IMG/VR virus record: IMGVR_UViG_3300024308_000302
Coordinates: 124,001 to 188,000 of that record
DNA: 64,000 nucleotides
Strand: one strand, 5' to 3'
Shown here: in pieces, positions 787 to 60,012 of the stretch
Position numbering within the stretch: the first letter of the stretch is position 1
Layout of the letters: each line of letters starts with the position of its first letter
The notes under the pieces: generated by a model
What the model was told of the DNA's origin: nothing
The model's input: only the letters and a program-made list of their open reading frames with translations
Database searches by the model: none
Made by a program: the position numbers and the translations under genes

Positions 787-845
787 GTGTAGTAGGATTC
801 GAACCTAACAAATGGTTAACAAACCAAGCTCCCAACTGAGTACAC
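787..845 (-). pseudogene. Shrunken tRNA-Asn(GUU)-like element
   Basis: - strand GTGTA-CTCAGTTGGGAG-C-TTGGTTTGTTAACCA...TAGGTTCGAATCCTA-C-TACAC; 5-bp acceptor, no CCA. Confidence 0.5.
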
Positions 846-880
846 TGGCAATTATATCTAATTAGAGGAATTATTGCAAG

Positions 881-1288
881 TTAATAAGAATAAAATTTTC
901 TCATTCTAATTGATTTGTTAATGATTTTCCTAAGCTCTACTTTTTTCTGAACAACATCAGAAGTAGCTTCGATTACCTTGAAAATACGATTTTGTAAGGC
1001 TTCTACATCTTCCTGAAATTTAAAGTAGCGTGATTTAGAGAAGTCATCCATTTCTTCATTGAATTCATCATTTTTCAAGTTAACTATGTCTGTCATGTAA
1101 AGACAGGTAGCATAGTTATTCATGTCAGAATAAAAAGTGGCATTAGCTAAAGAAAGCTCATGTTTAGCCAGAGCAACCATCGAATTTACTGATCGCATTT
1201 TATCAAAAAGAACATTTCGTTTTTTAATGTATACTCGCTTGCATGCACGATAAGCACTAAAACTGTTCAAAAATGACATGGAAAACAT
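881..1288 (-). CDS. Hypothetical protein
   Basis: 135-aa ORF on the dominant strand. Confidence 0.65.
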   Translation of the reverse strand: MFSMSFLNSFSAYRACKRVYIKKRNVLFDKMRSVNSMVALAKHELSLANATFYSDMNNYATCLYMTDIVNLKNDEFNEEMDDFSKSRYFKFQEDVEALQNRIFKVIEATSDVVQKKVELRKIINKSIRMRKFYSY

Positions 1289-1418
1289 CCTATATGTATT
1301 TGAATATCTATTTTAGCAAAATACGATAAGAAAGTAAAGAAAAAAGCCACTCAATTTTCTTTTTAACTGACATATAAACTCCTGCTAAATATGTTATGTA
1401 CTTAATAAAGATAATTAA

Positions 1419-1886
1419 TCAAGTGCAAAACAGACCAGAATCTTTTGAGTATAAAATATGTTCAGCATCATTTTTAACAACGAACATAATTTGACCGGCT
1501 GATTCAACCACTTCTTTATCGTTATGGATATGAGCAAAATAAGTATCACAAGTCAAAACACCAAATGGTTCATGTGCAGTTTCTGGATACAAATCGAAAA
1601 GGACAGACAATTGAGATTTTTTCTGTTCTCCTTTCGAAAACCCAAAAAGAACAAAATCTTCGTCAGCAGTACAAACATCAATATCGAATTTGTATTTATG
1701 TGCCAGTGCAATATCAAGTGGATTATCATTGAATGAGTCCCAACCAACAGGATCGCAATCTGTAAAATCTGCCATCACCTTAGTAAGTTGGTCAGATGAC
1801 AAACTTGAAATTTTAGCCAAAGAAATAGAGTGGGATAGGCCCACAATGTCATGTACTTTAAATTGATTCTCTTGCTCATTAGACAT
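1419..1886 (-). CDS. Hypothetical protein
   Basis: Start revised to MSNEQ (ATG 1886); the longer track ORF overlaps tRNAs and a terminator. Confidence 0.75.
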   Translation of the reverse strand: MSNEQENQFKVHDIVGLSHSISLAKISSLSSDQLTKVMADFTDCDPVGWDSFNDNPLDIALAHKYKFDIDVCTADEDFVLFGFSKGEQKKSQLSVLFDLYPETAHEPFGVLTCDTYFAHIHNDKEVVESAGQIMFVVKNDAEHILYSKDSGLFCT

Positions 1887-1944
1887 GTTTGATATCCACT
1901 GTGTTAATGGATGTATTATATCAAAAAAGGATTTTAAAGTAAAT

Positions 1945-1969
1945 AAAAAACCATGCCGAAGCATGGTTT
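1945..1969 (-). terminator. Terminator ending the first tRNA operon
   Basis: AAACCATGC-TTCG-GCATGGTTT followed by T run. Confidence 0.85.
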
Positions 1970-1974
1970 CTAAG

Positions 1975-2051
1975 TGGTGCCCCCGATAGGAATCGAACCT
2001 ATGACGCGGAGTTGTCTTAACTCCCGCTCTACCTGCTGAGCTACAAGGGAC
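1975..2051 (-). tRNA. tRNA-like RNA with non-canonical anticodon loop (UAAGACA)
   Basis: Good D and T arms, encoded ACCA; loop lacks U33 and purine 37; bulged or mismatched acceptor. Confidence 0.6.
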
Positions 2052-2056
2052 TAATC

Positions 2057-2132
2057 TGGTGCCGTCTGTGGGACTCGAACTCACGACCTACTGATTACAA
2101 GTCAGTTGCTCTACCAACTGAGCTAAGACGGC
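2057..2132 (-). tRNA. tRNA-Thr(UGU)
   Basis: GCCGTCT...CT-TGT-AA...AGACGGCACCA cloverleaf. Confidence 0.95.
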
Positions 2133-2235
2133 ATAATGATTTTTTAAAAACAGTGTTTACTCACTGATGTTTTATTCAGCATAAACTGCTCTGTGTTTTT
2201 CTTCACAGTTGGATATGCCAAAAACATATCCGAAA

Positions 2236-2312
2236 TGGTTGCGGGGGTAGGATTTGAACCTACGATCTCCAGCTTATGAGACTGGTGAGTTACCGGGCTT
2301 CTCCACCCCGCG
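2236..2312 (-). tRNA. tRNA-fMet(CAU)-like
   Basis: CGCGGGG/CCCCGCA acceptor with C1:A72 mismatch, CAT anticodon; anticodon stem CCAGT/GCTGG. Confidence 0.9.
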
Positions 2313-2320
2313 TCAAAACT

Positions 2321-57615: not shown

Positions 57616-57691
57616 GTGTTTTTTTTGTTTATTTTTCAAATATTTATCGAAAAAATCTTTGACAAAATCTTAAAGAATATGTTAAGGATAA

Positions 57692-58852
57692 TCAAACAAC
57701 AAACATGTCCACGACCATTAAATCATCTTGATTCAAAGGTGTATCTGTTGAAAGTCCCAAATTATCTAATTTTTCTAGGACAGAAAAAGATGGATGAAAT
57801 GACTTGAAATAGTCAAGTTTATTCACAATGACATTATTAATTGACATTTCATGCTCTTTAACCATATCCAAAGTAAATTTTGAAGACGATTTTTTTAATT
57901 TTCCGTAAAAATAAGTATAAGTAACTAATCTATCATTCTTATATCTAATCAAAGGTGTTTCTTTATTCAAAAGACTTTGCCGGAAATTTGAATAGCTGGG
58001 GCTTTCATCAAGAGCACTGGTGTATTCATTAAATTTTGTAATATAGCTTACAGAAAAAACACGATTTGTTTTTCTAAATAAGCAATATTGATTATCTAAC
58101 GTTTTTAAAACCCGAATATTCTCAAGATTTAAATGCTTCAAATAAAACTCTTTTTTACCTTTTAATTGATCGTTAATACCTTCACGAGTATCCACATCAG
58201 CTAAAAATGAAAAAGGACTTGAAACTATCGTTGATGTAAAGAATGATTCAAAATCACTCAGATGAAAAATATTATTATCAACATAATAATAAACAACAGG
58301 ATCAGTTTTTACTTGATCATTATCATATATAGAATAAAAACTATATTTGAAAATATTTTTTAAAATTTTTTTTCTTTTGAAATAAATAATCTGATATTTT
58401 TTATGTTCCCGATAAATATGTGAATGATATTTATCAAAATCATATCTTTTATGAAATTTAGTTGTTTTTTTCACCAATTGATACATATGTTTAAGATGAT
58501 TATCAAAAGGAGTTTGATGAAAAGACTTAAAAAAACCATTATGGAAATTAACAAAGTCAATTAAATTTCTTTTTGGGATTTTAAATAGAATATTATTTTT
58601 AATGGTATCAACAACAAAATCATCTAAAGATAGTTGACTATCATCCATAGGAGTTGCATAGTTTATTTTTAGAAGTTTTCCTAGCTCATCATGTTGGATT
58701 GTGACATACATAATACGATCATCAAAATCAATAAATGCTTTCAAACCATTATTTGCATTGACATCGTAACGACAGTCACCCAGTTGAGTCACAAAAAAAT
58801 CTGGCTCACTGTATAAACAAATATTTAAAAAGTTAATAAGTTTATGGAGCAT
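57692..58852 (-). CDS. Hypothetical protein, C-terminal motif family
   Basis: Ends PS...PLNQDDLMVVDMFVV. Confidence 0.75.
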   Translation of the reverse strand: MLHKLINFLNICLYSEPDFFVTQLGDCRYDVNANNGLKAFIDFDDRIMYVTIQHDELGKLLKINYATPMDDSQLSLDDFVVDTIKNNILFKIPKRNLIDFVNFHNGFFKSFHQTPFDNHLKHMYQLVKKTTKFHKRYDFDKYHSHIYREHKKYQIIYFKRKKILKNIFKYSFYSIYDNDQVKTDPVVYYYVDNNIFHLSDFESFFTSTIVSSPFSFLADVDTREGINDQLKGKKEFYLKHLNLENIRVLKTLDNQYCLFRKTNRVFSVSYITKFNEYTSALDESPSYSNFRQSLLNKETPLIRYKNDRLVTYTYFYGKLKKSSSKFTLDMVKEHEMSINNVIVNKLDYFKSFHPSFSVLEKLDNLGLSTDTPLNQDDLMVVDMFVV

Positions 58853-58919
58853 AATAGATCCCAAAAATTAAATTTATAGAACCTTCATGATATCATAATT
58901 TTTGTAGGCTTACTAGATA

Positions 58920-59198
58920 TTAATCGCCACGAAAAACAAAATTGCTTGGTGGTAAAGATTTAGAAGGGCCTTCTTTATCAGCCAATGGTTGAATGGTGTA
59001 TAAAACGGTATCCCAGCTTTGATACTGAGTGTTAAACATATAGAGTTTTTTTGTTCTCATGTTCTGTTTGTAATTTTGATTATTGTGGTTATCAATGAAA
59101 TAAACAAAACCATCATAGATATAAGTACATTGAAGCGTTGATTTCGCTTTGTTTTCAACGGTTAAAAGATAAAGAGAGCCTTCATTATATGTTGTCAT
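58920..59198 (-). CDS. Hypothetical protein
   Basis: AAGGA SD. Confidence 0.7.
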   Translation of the reverse strand: MTTYNEGSLYLLTVENKAKSTLQCTYIYDGFVYFIDNHNNQNYKQNMRTKKLYMFNTQYQSWDTVLYTIQPLADKEGPSKSLPPSNFVFRGD

Positions 59199-59328
59199 TC
59201 CTTATACTCCATTAGAAAGGTTACAGGCAATTTGAAGATCAATCGCCTACATTTACATTATATAAAGATTCATATTTTTTACAAGGCCGTTTCAACAATA
59301 AATAAAATAAAAATTGTTTTTAGAAAAA

Positions 59329-59436
59329 GATAAACCTCTTCAAACTTACTTACACACATTAACATTAATAGAGCTGCTACCTTCCGGTCCTGACTCGGTT
59401 TTCAATGCAATGTTATAAGGGCCGAAGAGGTCTATC
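59329..59436 (-). ncRNA. ffs: Bacterial small SRP RNA (4.5S)-like gene
   Basis: 108-nt rod with 15-bp terminal helix and domain IV GAG-TCAGGACC-GGAA-GGTAGCAG-CTC. Confidence 0.9.
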
Positions 59437-59523
59437 ATTACAACAACAATAATAACAGAGATTCTAAAATATGCAAGCAAAAAAATAAAAAAAGCCACCA
59501 CAAGGTGACTTTATTTTTTAAGT

Positions 59524-59600
59524 TGGCCCAGCCAGCAGGAATCGAACCTGCAACCGTCCGCTTAGAAGGCGGATGCTCTATCCAATTGAGCTATGGCTGG
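59524..59600 (-). tRNA. tRNA-Arg(UCU)
   Basis: CCAGCCA...CT-TCT-AA...TGGCTGGGCCA. Confidence 0.95.
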
Positions 59601-59607
59601 ATAAGTT

Positions 59608-59694
59608 TGGAGCGGAGAAAACTTTCTCAACACTCCATCAGTGACACACCCCGCGACACCGCTGTCACCTTGTATCCTTTAGCGGATACCCCAC
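59608..59694 (-). ncRNA. Structured three-hairpin RNA, copy 2
   Basis: Homologous to 39131..39213. Confidence 0.75.
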
Positions 59695-59735
59695 TTGTTC
59701 TATTAATATAATCTCATAATCTAAATTAAAAATTC

Positions 59736-59956
59736 TTACTGCATTGGAAGCTCACCTCTGGCACTTATCAACTTTAATGAAATGTGAATTAAATTACTGA
59801 TTTTTACAGGTCATCATGTTCGTCTTTCATAGTAACACCTCTTTTTTAAATATCGTCAAATTCTTCTTTCATTATTTTATCCTCAATATGCTAAATCAAA
59901 ATAGTATCTAATAATATATTAGTGCTGCATTACTGGCTCACCTCCGAGCACCTATC
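59736..59956 (-). other. Cluster of four SD-led minigenes: MQH (59919..59930), MKEEFDDI (59846..59872), MKDEHDDL (59804..59830), MQ (59736..59744)
   Basis: Each ATG has GAGG(TG/A) a few nt upstream and an early TAA. Confidence 0.55.
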
Positions 59957-59983
59957 TAATTTTTTACTTCGTTTGTGTCATCT

Positions 59984-60012
59984 ATTCTAATTTATTCAAT
60001 ATTTGGTGTCAA
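59984..60012 (-). promoter_or_regulatory. Sigma70 promoter upstream of the minigene/ncRNA/tRNA-Arg unit
   Basis: TTGACA-17-TAGAAT. Confidence 0.8.

Follow-up and report, generated by a model that had tools for sequence, protein, structure and literature searches.

Phage tRNAs have been proposed to evade anticodon nucleases through mutations in their anticodon loops (van den Berg et al. 2023, PMC10264068), a T5 tRNA neutralises PARIS (PMC11464382), and phage tRNAs evade retrons (PMC11555353). These known counter-defence tRNAs are still normal decoders. Here we analysed a 64,000-nucleotide stretch of DNA, hereafter the window, which spans bases 124,001–188,000 of the 290,157-bp IMG/VR record IMGVR_UViG_3300024308_000302 (G000 in the coordinates below). 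It carries canonical tRNA genes together with tRNA-like elements that go further than the known examples, with U33 lost or anticodon loops resized. An earlier note, made from the sequence alone, had read the locus as an RNA-heavy toolkit for taking over translation and protein targeting. We tentatively regard it, with a probability of about 0.45, as an RNA and translation island of an AT-rich phage-like genome, in which supply tRNAs are combined with shape-conserved tRNA mimics under host-type sigma70 promoters.

The tRNA clusters of T4, T5, and PA5oct are interleaved with small open reading frames (ORFs) and a homing endonuclease, as is the array studied here, and the T4 cluster also holds two stable RNAs of unassigned role. 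The window encodes the same isoacceptors (Leu-UAA, Arg-UCU, Met-CAU, Thr-UGU, Asn-GUU, Pro-UGG, and Gly-UCC) as PA5oct (MK797984, PMC7318152) and T4/T5-type clusters, and its Leu, Met, and Arg tRNAs are 87–89% identical to those of PA5oct. It differs in its 12 Leu-UAA genes (counted over the whole record, which has 35 ARAGORN tRNAs), in its conserved non-canonical tRNA-like RNAs, and in the signal recognition particle (SRP) RNA and minigenes located inside the array. The two proteins tried gave no sign of kinship to PA5oct at the protein level.

ARAGORN detected 20 tRNA genes in the window, all on the minus strand, and Rfam gave 21 matches to the tRNA family RF00005 at 29.5–74.5 bits, with a gathering threshold of 29 bits. 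We took a 7-nt anticodon loop, U33, and a purine at position 37 as the mark of a working decoder. By loop inspection, 15 canonical sense tRNAs (Thr, initiator-like Met, Asn, Pro, Gly, six Leu-UAA, Leu-CAA, two Arg-UCU, and Met-CAU) and two CUA tRNAs have such loops, the same counts as in the earlier note, and every one of the sense tRNAs also encodes its CCA end. The set reads TTA/TTG, AGA, ACA, CCA, GGA, AAY, AUG, and possibly AUA; codon usage in this genome, per 1000, is 21 for TTA, 7.7 for AGA, 11 for ATA, 13.7 for ACA, and 14.4 for CCA. The 15 sense tRNAs are most simply accounted for by codon supply to an AT-rich genome whose host is GC-rich. Together with the two CUA tRNAs they would be ordinary decoders amplified by local duplication, and would include readers of A-ending codons (TTA, AGA, ACA, CCA, GGA, and possibly AUA) that would be scarce in such a host. 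The tRNA cassettes show repeated local duplication, in some cases with a flanking micropeptide gene or leader. The small gene between tRNA-Met and tRNA-Asn (2321–2533) is missing in natural variants of three sequencing runs (joints 2323->2562 and 2329->2558), an indel polymorphism within a tRNA cluster.

Beside these decoders we found seven aberrant tRNA-like elements, referred to below by their first coordinates (785, 1975, 5761, 5987, 8426, 39041, and 39284; Table 1). The class described in the earlier note was thus present, with seven members rather than about eight. Three weak tRNA-like matches had been added by an unfiltered covariance model built from the window's own tRNAs. The minimum-energy fold is a cloverleaf in four of the seven (1975, 5761, 39041, and 39284), and four of the seven encode CCA. 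Anticodon-loop defects comprise A33 and C37 in 1975, an 8-nt loop in 39041, and C33 and U37 in 39284; because these loops fall outside our definition of a decoder, we filed the three elements as tRNA-like RNAs, not tRNAs. U33 is also replaced in G000:35401 (G33), in two elements of a distant relative, G004 (L047:721 and L049:275, both A33), and in L095:8010 (G33), an Arg-type tRNA on a 1.28-Mb relative, so that U33 loss or a resized loop recurs in G000, G004, and the relative on the 1.28-Mb contig. The residual anticodons UUU, GAA, GAU, AGA, and ACG match the genome's commonest codons, and canonical tRNAs are missing for these amino acids.

MYG1 homologues define a lineage of relatives at 46–81% identity, and across the phage lineage the protein is conserved at 62–81%. 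From this lineage we used G004, a 437-kb IMG/VR contig whose MYG1 is 70% identical and in which only 57 (~13%) of the 446 ORFs reaching 100 aa have a homologue. In 10 comparisons of canonical orthologues, the anticodon loop was changed at 0 of 77 positions and 19 stem pairs had changed in a compensatory manner; tRNA-Thr is 100% identical in G004, and the acceptor stem of tRNA-Asn has four compensatory pairs. Three aberrant families were compared, namely A (1975), B (39041), and C (G000:35401, outside the window). Half of the anticodon-loop positions in these families had changed (12 of 24), whereas the canonical tRNAs showed no change in 77 (Fisher p = 2e-9). Pairing was nevertheless kept in 20 of 24 changed stem pairs (16 by double and 4 by one-sided change), the other four being non-standard in one genome, and the T loops were changed at 0, 0, and 2 of 7 positions.

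Family A is the last gene of an Asn–initiator Met–Thr–A cluster, and this block is syntenic in G004 at 78.7% nucleotide identity. The G004 orthologue has an identical T arm and variable region, an A-U to C-G exchange in the anticodon stem, and a 6-nt loop, UAGAAG. Family B together with its leader is paralogous to the tRNA-Arg 59524 unit but has diverged from it, to 75.8% over 178 nt. All stems of that tRNA are kept, with four compensatory pairs, while G has become A at the discriminator and CUUCUAA has become AUUUUGCC in the loop. The G004 counterpart of family B has a 9-nt UUUU loop and A73; a UUU(U) loop and A73 are thus found in both genomes despite descent from an Arg tRNA with G73. For families A–C, random decay is a poor explanation of these patterns.

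The contrary account is plain codon supply plus junk, in which the canonical tRNAs do all the work and the aberrant elements are duplication pseudogenes at various stages of decay. Under random decay, stems should break as often as loops, but all four stems of families A, B, and C have survived the 16 double changes relative to a very distant genome, and the T arm and variable region of family A are unchanged between genomes with so few ORFs in common. Elements 785, 39041, and 39284 also have promoters of their own (10–11/12), and 785 and 39041 their own terminators. Cassette duplications are nevertheless many, including the 12 Leu-UAA genes and the duplicated Leu–Arg–ORF and leader–tRNA segments, and four elements (5761, 5987, 785, and 8426) score at 15–30 bits. 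Taken as a whole, we consider this account unlikely.

Several observations weigh against shape-conserved mimics, and some of them favour decay. Elements 5987–6037, 785–846, and 8426–8444 reach only 15–19 bits with the window's own model, below the Rfam tRNA threshold. Five of the seven elements in the window (785, 5761, 5987, 8426, and 39284) have no counterpart in G004, and the earlier claim that the set does not reflect random decay is supported for families A–C and not for these five. A per-arm comparison across relatives, which the earlier note had proposed, separated aberrant from canonical loops as described above, yet when loop and body are compared inside the aberrant class, the excess of change in the loop is only marginal (p = 0.065). 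Families B and C are presumed to be orthologous to their G004 counterparts. Detection dependent on the T arm biases the set toward intact elbows, so that of the earlier description, intact T arms with damage at the anticodon, the loop defects of 1975, 39041, and 39284 stand, while the T-arm pattern partly reflects how the elements were detected, since one with a damaged T arm would be missed. A decoy might be expected to conserve the anticodon loop, because anticodon nucleases read that loop, and here the loop is the non-conserved part. Finally, the SRP RNA is missing from G004, none of the listed sequencing runs holding this DNA is on record as RNA, the 1.54-Mb source contig, perhaps a phage-like element of megabase scale, may not be a phage, and the host, deduced from homologues, is only probably a GC-rich pseudomonad.

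Reading expression, mimicry target, and any defence role from sequence, we infer a second class of RNAs beside the decoders, tRNA-shaped and without a decoding-competent anticodon loop, with U33 replaced or the loop resized to 6–9 nt. At least three families would keep the cloverleaf, the elbow, and usually CCA under purifying selection, and would most likely act by tRNA mimicry toward host factors that handle tRNAs. We favour nuclease-insensitive stand-ins or sponges for the tRNAs of the commonest codons (Lys AAA, Phe, Ile, Ser, and Arg CGU), which may work beside the conserved T4-type RNA ligase 1. This ligase is encoded in both G000 and G004 at 70% identity and is among the best-conserved proteins of the lineage, which therefore appears equipped for tRNA repair; RtcB was not found in the genome. 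In T4, RNA ligase 1 answers the anticodon nuclease PrrC (PMC10264068). Because the ligase is conserved, a role against tRNA-directed defence seems the likeliest one for the tRNA-like families.

In a comparison made by loops alone, these elements resemble the nuclease-evading phage tRNAs in their off-norm anticodon loops, in the T4-type RNA ligase 1 in the genome, and in the idea of tRNA-pool protection. The loops of the published tRNAs still have the canonical 7 nt, altered only by point changes, and decoding is assumed for them. Here U33 is replaced or the loop has 6–9 nt, which makes decoding doubtful, and relatives conserve the body but not the loop. By analogy, the elements might work like nuclease-evading tRNAs, which we offer as a hypothesis, and the decoys against PrrC, RloC, VapC, or PARIS suggested in the earlier note are likewise conjectural. 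If true, conserved tRNA look-alikes would extend the counter-defence idea from resistant tRNAs to tRNA mimics, with families A, B, and C as candidates. The conserved tRNA-like families appear to be undescribed. Together with the working tRNAs, the SRP RNA, the promoter-driven minigenes, and the tRNA-care enzymes, they suggest a virus that mimics host RNAs beyond supplying spare tRNAs.

The near-consensus promoters reported in the earlier note were borne out by a scan for sigma70-like consensus sites at ≥10/12. The minus strand has 58 such sites and the plus strand 28, compared with 27 ± 4.4 in simulated sequence, and the sites often lie directly before RNA genes. Element 785 has its own promoter at 879–851 (10/12) and a hairpin-plus-U terminator. 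Element 39284 has a promoter at 39445 (11/12) and a cloverleaf fold with z = -2.0. Family B has a structured leader of ~100 nt, a promoter at 39269, and its own terminator. Elements 5987 and 5761 belong to one minus-strand operon (5761–6344), which runs from a promoter at 6394–6366 through tRNA-Pro, element 5987–6037, a 113-nt leader (5842–5954), and element 5761–5837 to a terminator.

The leaders of family B and tRNA-Arg 59524 form a paralogous pair in which 24 of 24 predicted pairs are kept in both copies; five of these pairs vary, one by a double change, and the 59601–59708 leader folds with z = -3.0. The third leader, at 5842–5954, is 95% identical to a Met-tRNA leader at G000:114880–114993, and the downstream tRNA differs. 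No Rfam family matched the leader RNAs, and no relatives were found with the 21-nt core that the pair shares. Structured leaders placed directly 5' of a tRNA or tRNA-like RNA, or fused to different downstream tRNAs, would suit a role of the tRNA shapes as processing handles. In that case RNase P/RNase Z signals would free leader RNAs and punctuate polycistronic transcripts, only the acceptor–T minihelix and CCA would matter, and the anticodon loop would drift; ORF starts 3–33 nt past tRNA 3' ends are in line with this. Compensatory change has, however, also preserved the anticodon and D stems, for which a minihelix signal would have no use, and canonical tRNAs could serve the same purpose. A processing role as the explanation of the tRNA-like families therefore appears quite unlikely.

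Another possibility is that the resized-loop RNAs are unusual decoders that read quadruplets or frameshifts, and that the CUA tRNAs drive stop read-through or a changed code. The 8–9-nt U-rich loops are conserved in two genomes. The loop CUCUAAA is invariant in both CUA tRNAs and in the G004 copy, with covariation in the acceptor and T stems, and TAG makes up only 6% of stops. Loops without U33 or with only 6 nt are poor decoders, however. TAG recoding was rejected from ORF statistics, since ORFs gain less length when TAG is read as sense than when either of the other two stops is, and programmed TAG read-through was rejected because extensions of ≥60 codons follow TAG (3/31) no more often than TGA (6/95) or TAA (25/284). 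We regard unusual decoding as very doubtful.

A relative on an 80-kb contig has UUA in place of CUA. At L031:20252–20326, an amber-tRNA homologue has a UUA (ochre) loop on a weak anticodon stem, and G004 carries a D-arm-less tRNA-like RNA with a CUA-containing loop and CCA (L053:1250–1318).

Lambda bar minigenes are a known type of phage minigene. Minigenes can induce peptidyl-tRNA drop-off and sequester tRNAs (PMC2490762). Four units between the promoter at 60012 and tRNA-Arg 59524 have the bar-type layout, as predicted from sequence: behind the 11/12 promoter, each has a Shine-Dalgarno sequence, AUG, one to seven codons, and a stop. The two MQ-type units among them have Shine-Dalgarno sequences of 8–9 nt. 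An MQ-type unit opens with a promoter, followed by a conserved 15-nt block with the 8–9-nt Shine-Dalgarno sequence, a spacer, ATG CAG, 0–4 more codons, and a stop; there are seven copies in the record and two in G004, at 93–97% identity over 31–43 nt. The likeness to lambda bar lies in this order of parts and in a phage genome that bears a peptidyl-tRNA hydrolase. Unlike bar, the units form a conserved multi-copy family with a promoter for each copy, a long Shine-Dalgarno sequence, and CAG instead of AUA as the second codon, and the hydrolase is of the archaeal/eukaryotic Pth2 type. This promoter-bearing minigene family appears to be undescribed and would be a natural system in which to study peptidyl-tRNA drop-off.

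The minigenes, Pth2, MYG1, and basic micropeptides listed in the earlier note were all confirmed by ORF inspection, Pfam, and PDB matches. Pth2 matches an archaeal Pth2 structure (PDB 2zv3, 1.1e-11) and phrog_1866, and MYG1 matches a PDB entry for 'MYG1 exonuclease' (1.5e-23). A tblastn search against phages gave one distant match for MYG1 and none for the largest ORF. The MQGS...KRRNRH micropeptide has six paralogues in the genome and one in G004, and it lies upstream of a tRNA in the three copies examined. The minigenes with their strong ribosome-binding sites, Pth2, and MYG1 may act on the same tRNA and ribosome pool. Lineage relatives encode aminoacyl-tRNA synthetases (TyrRS and a class I synthetase) near MYG1 and the antiporter gene described below (L033 4420–5679, L034 5320–6579, and L095 257–1657); no aminoacyl-tRNA synthetase was seen in the window.

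The SRP RNA proposed in the earlier note gave a full-length match to RF00169 (model positions 1–97), with an intact domain IV that has the GGAA tetraloop and conserved flanks. Its terminal helix is followed by a U tract and is predicted to be able to terminate transcription. It is like bacterial 4.5S/small SRP RNA in length of match, tetraloop, and domain IV flanks. It differs in belonging to a virus-classed record without Ffh, in an AT-rich, divergent helix outside domain IV, and in its location between a tRNA terminator and small ORFs. No Ffh M domain was found in G000, G004, or G001, so any Ffh that the RNA uses must be the host's, presumably bound through the Ffh-binding domain IV that it keeps. 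If protein targeting is taken over at all, as had been claimed, the presence of this RNA would be the only sign of it. A more ambitious picture, in which a lineage of very large, possibly megabase-scale pseudomonad elements fields non-decoding tRNA look-alikes that absorb or resist tRNA-directed defences, a 4.5S RNA capturing Ffh, and minigenes that manipulate ribosomes and peptidyl-tRNA and are balanced by Pth2, seems improbable to us.

A blastn search of the SRP RNA against 50,697 GenBank phage records gave no match, and the 390-aa neighbour of the RNA has no relatives in IMG/VR. Scanning 2.9 million viral contigs for the SRP core motif yielded 16 places, most of which resemble host ffs genes at contig ends. 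One other, unrelated huge phage, represented by contigs of 497 and 372 kb and carrying 49 tRNAs, encodes a scored small SRP RNA within its tRNA array; on a 46-kb contig bearing 22 tRNAs, the motif lies between tRNAs but has no scored match. Among the viral copies, the helices covary and domain IV is conserved. SRP RNAs thus recur inside tRNA arrays of huge phages. This appears to be undescribed: no paper on a phage-encoded SRP RNA was found in the literature searched, and one paper has ffs as a prophage attachment site. With a virus SRP RNA in a tRNA array, membrane-protein targeting becomes a process that phages might tune or block, the RNA itself perhaps boosting targeting or titrating Ffh. 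A 26-nt SRP motif used to seek the host matched only metagenome-assembled genomes of Acidimicrobiales, and was judged uninformative because it is mostly universal core.

IMG/VR classes the record as a provirus, 96% complete; its GC content is 33%. Its genes are short and nearly all on the minus strand, its largest ORF has 633 aa, and profile searches gave no Pfam or PHROG family for most of its proteins. The record was cut from a 1,539,155-bp metagenome contig (JGI 3300024308, Ga0247725_1000001), on which window positions 18645–19997, the antiporter gene, map to 408,899–414,251. This gene is single-copy there, and so the contig is not a concatemer; lineage relatives lie on contigs of 1.28, 1.84, and 1.86 Mb. 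If viral, the contig and its relatives would be about twice the largest quoted phage genome, 841 kb (bioRxiv 10.1101/2025.02.27.640493).

Such sizes raise the possibility that the 290-kb 'provirus' is part of a 1.5-Mb giant extrachromosomal element or unusual cell, whose RNA genes serve its own translation. The absence of longer ORFs and of matches to the Pfam capsid and terminase models Terminase_6N, Terminase_6C, and Gp23 (0 matches) would fit, but the latter test is weak, because the same models also miss the unrelated 497-kb huge phage. Against it stand the IMG/VR viral class, PHROG families, the T4-type RNA ligase 1, the HNH homing endonuclease, and the tRNA cassettes shared with PA5oct. 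The tRNA set is also far from complete, with 12 Leu-UAA genes and no canonical Lys, Phe, Glu, Asp, or others. We think a non-phage origin highly improbable.

Judged from 5,701 letters of sequence, the genome is present in 13 studies of public runs from subsurface, food, freshwater, soil, plant, silage, and wastewater samples, and several of the runs carrying it are labelled as single organisms. In these runs, fragmentary, near-identical contigs cover elements 785, 1975, and 5761, with about 220 differences overall. A separate set of near-identical contigs, found through an encoded-protein search, is 99.6–100% identical and, being so similar, uninformative on conservation. Nucleotide matches among the 50,697 phage records were confined to tRNA genes, the best of them, at 87–89%, to Leu-Met-Arg tRNAs from PA5oct-type jumbo phages of Pseudomonas. 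The NhaP/CPA1 antiporter has homologues of 70–83% identity within the phage lineage and, below these, cellular homologues at ~50–53%, of which those with an organism name are nearly all from Pseudomonas or close kin. These homologues and the PA5oct-type tRNA matches point to a GC-rich pseudomonad as the likely host. An antiporter is also an unusual membrane-transport gene for a phage and bears on the SRP RNA.

In the bacterial Y RNA YrlA, a permuted T arm, capped acceptor stem, and D arm lie inside a closing helix. The module at 8300–8470, which includes element 8426, has the same permuted order inside a closing helix, and Y RNA/Ro60 has been mentioned for jumbo phages (PMC7824862). A Y RNA/Ro60 reading was rejected: no TROVE protein was found in the genome, the module has no Rfam match, and its fold (z = -1.3) is not significant against shuffled sequence.

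Table 1. Features of the window discussed in the text, in window coordinates unless marked G000.
Feature	Position	Strand	Evidence or description
Short-acceptor tRNA-like RNA	785–846	-	D and T arms, 4-nt loop, no CCA, 14.8 bits
Aberrant family A	1975–2050	-	Full cloverleaf, CCA, loop UAAGACA (A33, C37)
tRNA-Thr(UGU)	2057–2132	-	ARAGORN, Rfam
Initiator-like tRNA-Met	2236–2312	-	ARAGORN, Rfam
70-aa ORF between tRNA-Met and tRNA-Asn	2321–2533	-	phrog_7399
tRNA-Asn(GUU)	2567–2642	-	ARAGORN, Rfam
Weak tRNA-like RNA with CCA	5761–5837	-	Rfam, 29.5 bits
Mini tRNA-like RNA	5987–6037	-	Own covariance model
tRNA-Pro(UGG)	6266–6344	-	Operon promoter 6394–6366, 11/12
Permuted-looking tRNA-like module	8300–8470	-	T arm, capped acceptor hairpin, Leu-type D arm, enclosed by 10-bp stem
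HNH homing endonuclease adjoining tRNA-Gly	15268–16476	-	phrog_559, 2.5e-82
tRNA-Gly(UCC)	16628–16701	-	ARAGORN
NhaP/CPA1 Na+/H+ antiporter, full-length	18645–19997	-	PF00999, 1.1e-59
41-aa basic micropeptide, net charge +9	32851–32976	-	phrog_1359; G004 orthologue 71% identical
MYG1-family 3'-5' exonuclease homologue	35218–36126	-	PF03690, 1.8e-49, 169.5 bits, profile 1–315 of 318
Aberrant family B	39041–39117	-	8-nt loop AUUUUGCC, A73, CCA
Structured leader RNAs, paralogous pair with 21-nt identical core	39118–39225, 59601–59708	-	Directly 5' of tRNA-like RNA/tRNA
Ile(GAU)-like tRNA	39284–39356	-	Loop GCGAUUA (C33, U37), no CCA
Pth2, archaeal/eukaryotic-type peptidyl-tRNA hydrolase (predicted)	42861–43331	-	PF01981, 2.9e-17, 63.4 bits against cut-off 23
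tRNA-Leu(UAA) at 44812, 45309, and 46906; tRNA-Arg(UCU) at 45400	44812–47156 region	-	ARAGORN
MQGS...KRRNRH basic micropeptides	45486–45614, 47022–47156	-	Each just upstream of a tRNA
Nudt16-like Nudix hydrolase, possibly RNA decapping type	50746–51318	-	phrog_9999, 2.6e-31
tRNA-Leu(UAA), promoter 9 nt upstream	52937–53023	-	ARAGORN, promoter scan
tRNA-Leu(CAA) at 55610, tRNA-Met(CAU) at 56352, tRNA-Leu(UAA) at 56969 and 57332, small ORFs between	55610–57417	-	ARAGORN, Rfam
CUA tRNAs	55840 and 56849	-	ARAGORN, Rfam, loop inspection
136-aa ORF between CUA tRNA (3 nt upstream) and tRNA-Met	56435–56845	-	Sub-threshold ProQ C-terminal match, E = 0.0035
Bacterial small SRP (4.5S-type) RNA	59334–59429	-	Rfam RF00169, 58.7 bits against cut-off 40
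tRNA-Arg(UCU)	59524–59600	-	ARAGORN; structured leader 59601–59708
Mini-ORFs MQ* (59736–59744), MKDEHDDL* (59804–59830), MKEEFDDI* (59846–59872), MQH* (59919–59930)	59736–59930	-	Promoter 60012–59984, 11/12
T4-type RNA ligase 1 (outside the window)	G000:66183–67316		PF09511 at 66576–67160, 92.7 bits

Other genes were observed in passing. At 27724–29116 on the minus strand, a WHH/colicin-type HNH nuclease of 221 aa (PF14414, 5.7e-17; PF12639, 2.4e-15) adjoins a SUKH/SMI1 immunity-type protein of 255 aa, forming a polymorphic-toxin-like toxin-immunity pair within the element. Outside the window, the same record encodes an M17 leucyl aminopeptidase (464 aa, G000:190065–191459), a TnpB/Cas12f-like protein (585 aa, G000:264692–266449), and a type IV pilin/shufflon-like protein with an N-terminal methylation motif (511 aa, G000:120868–122403).

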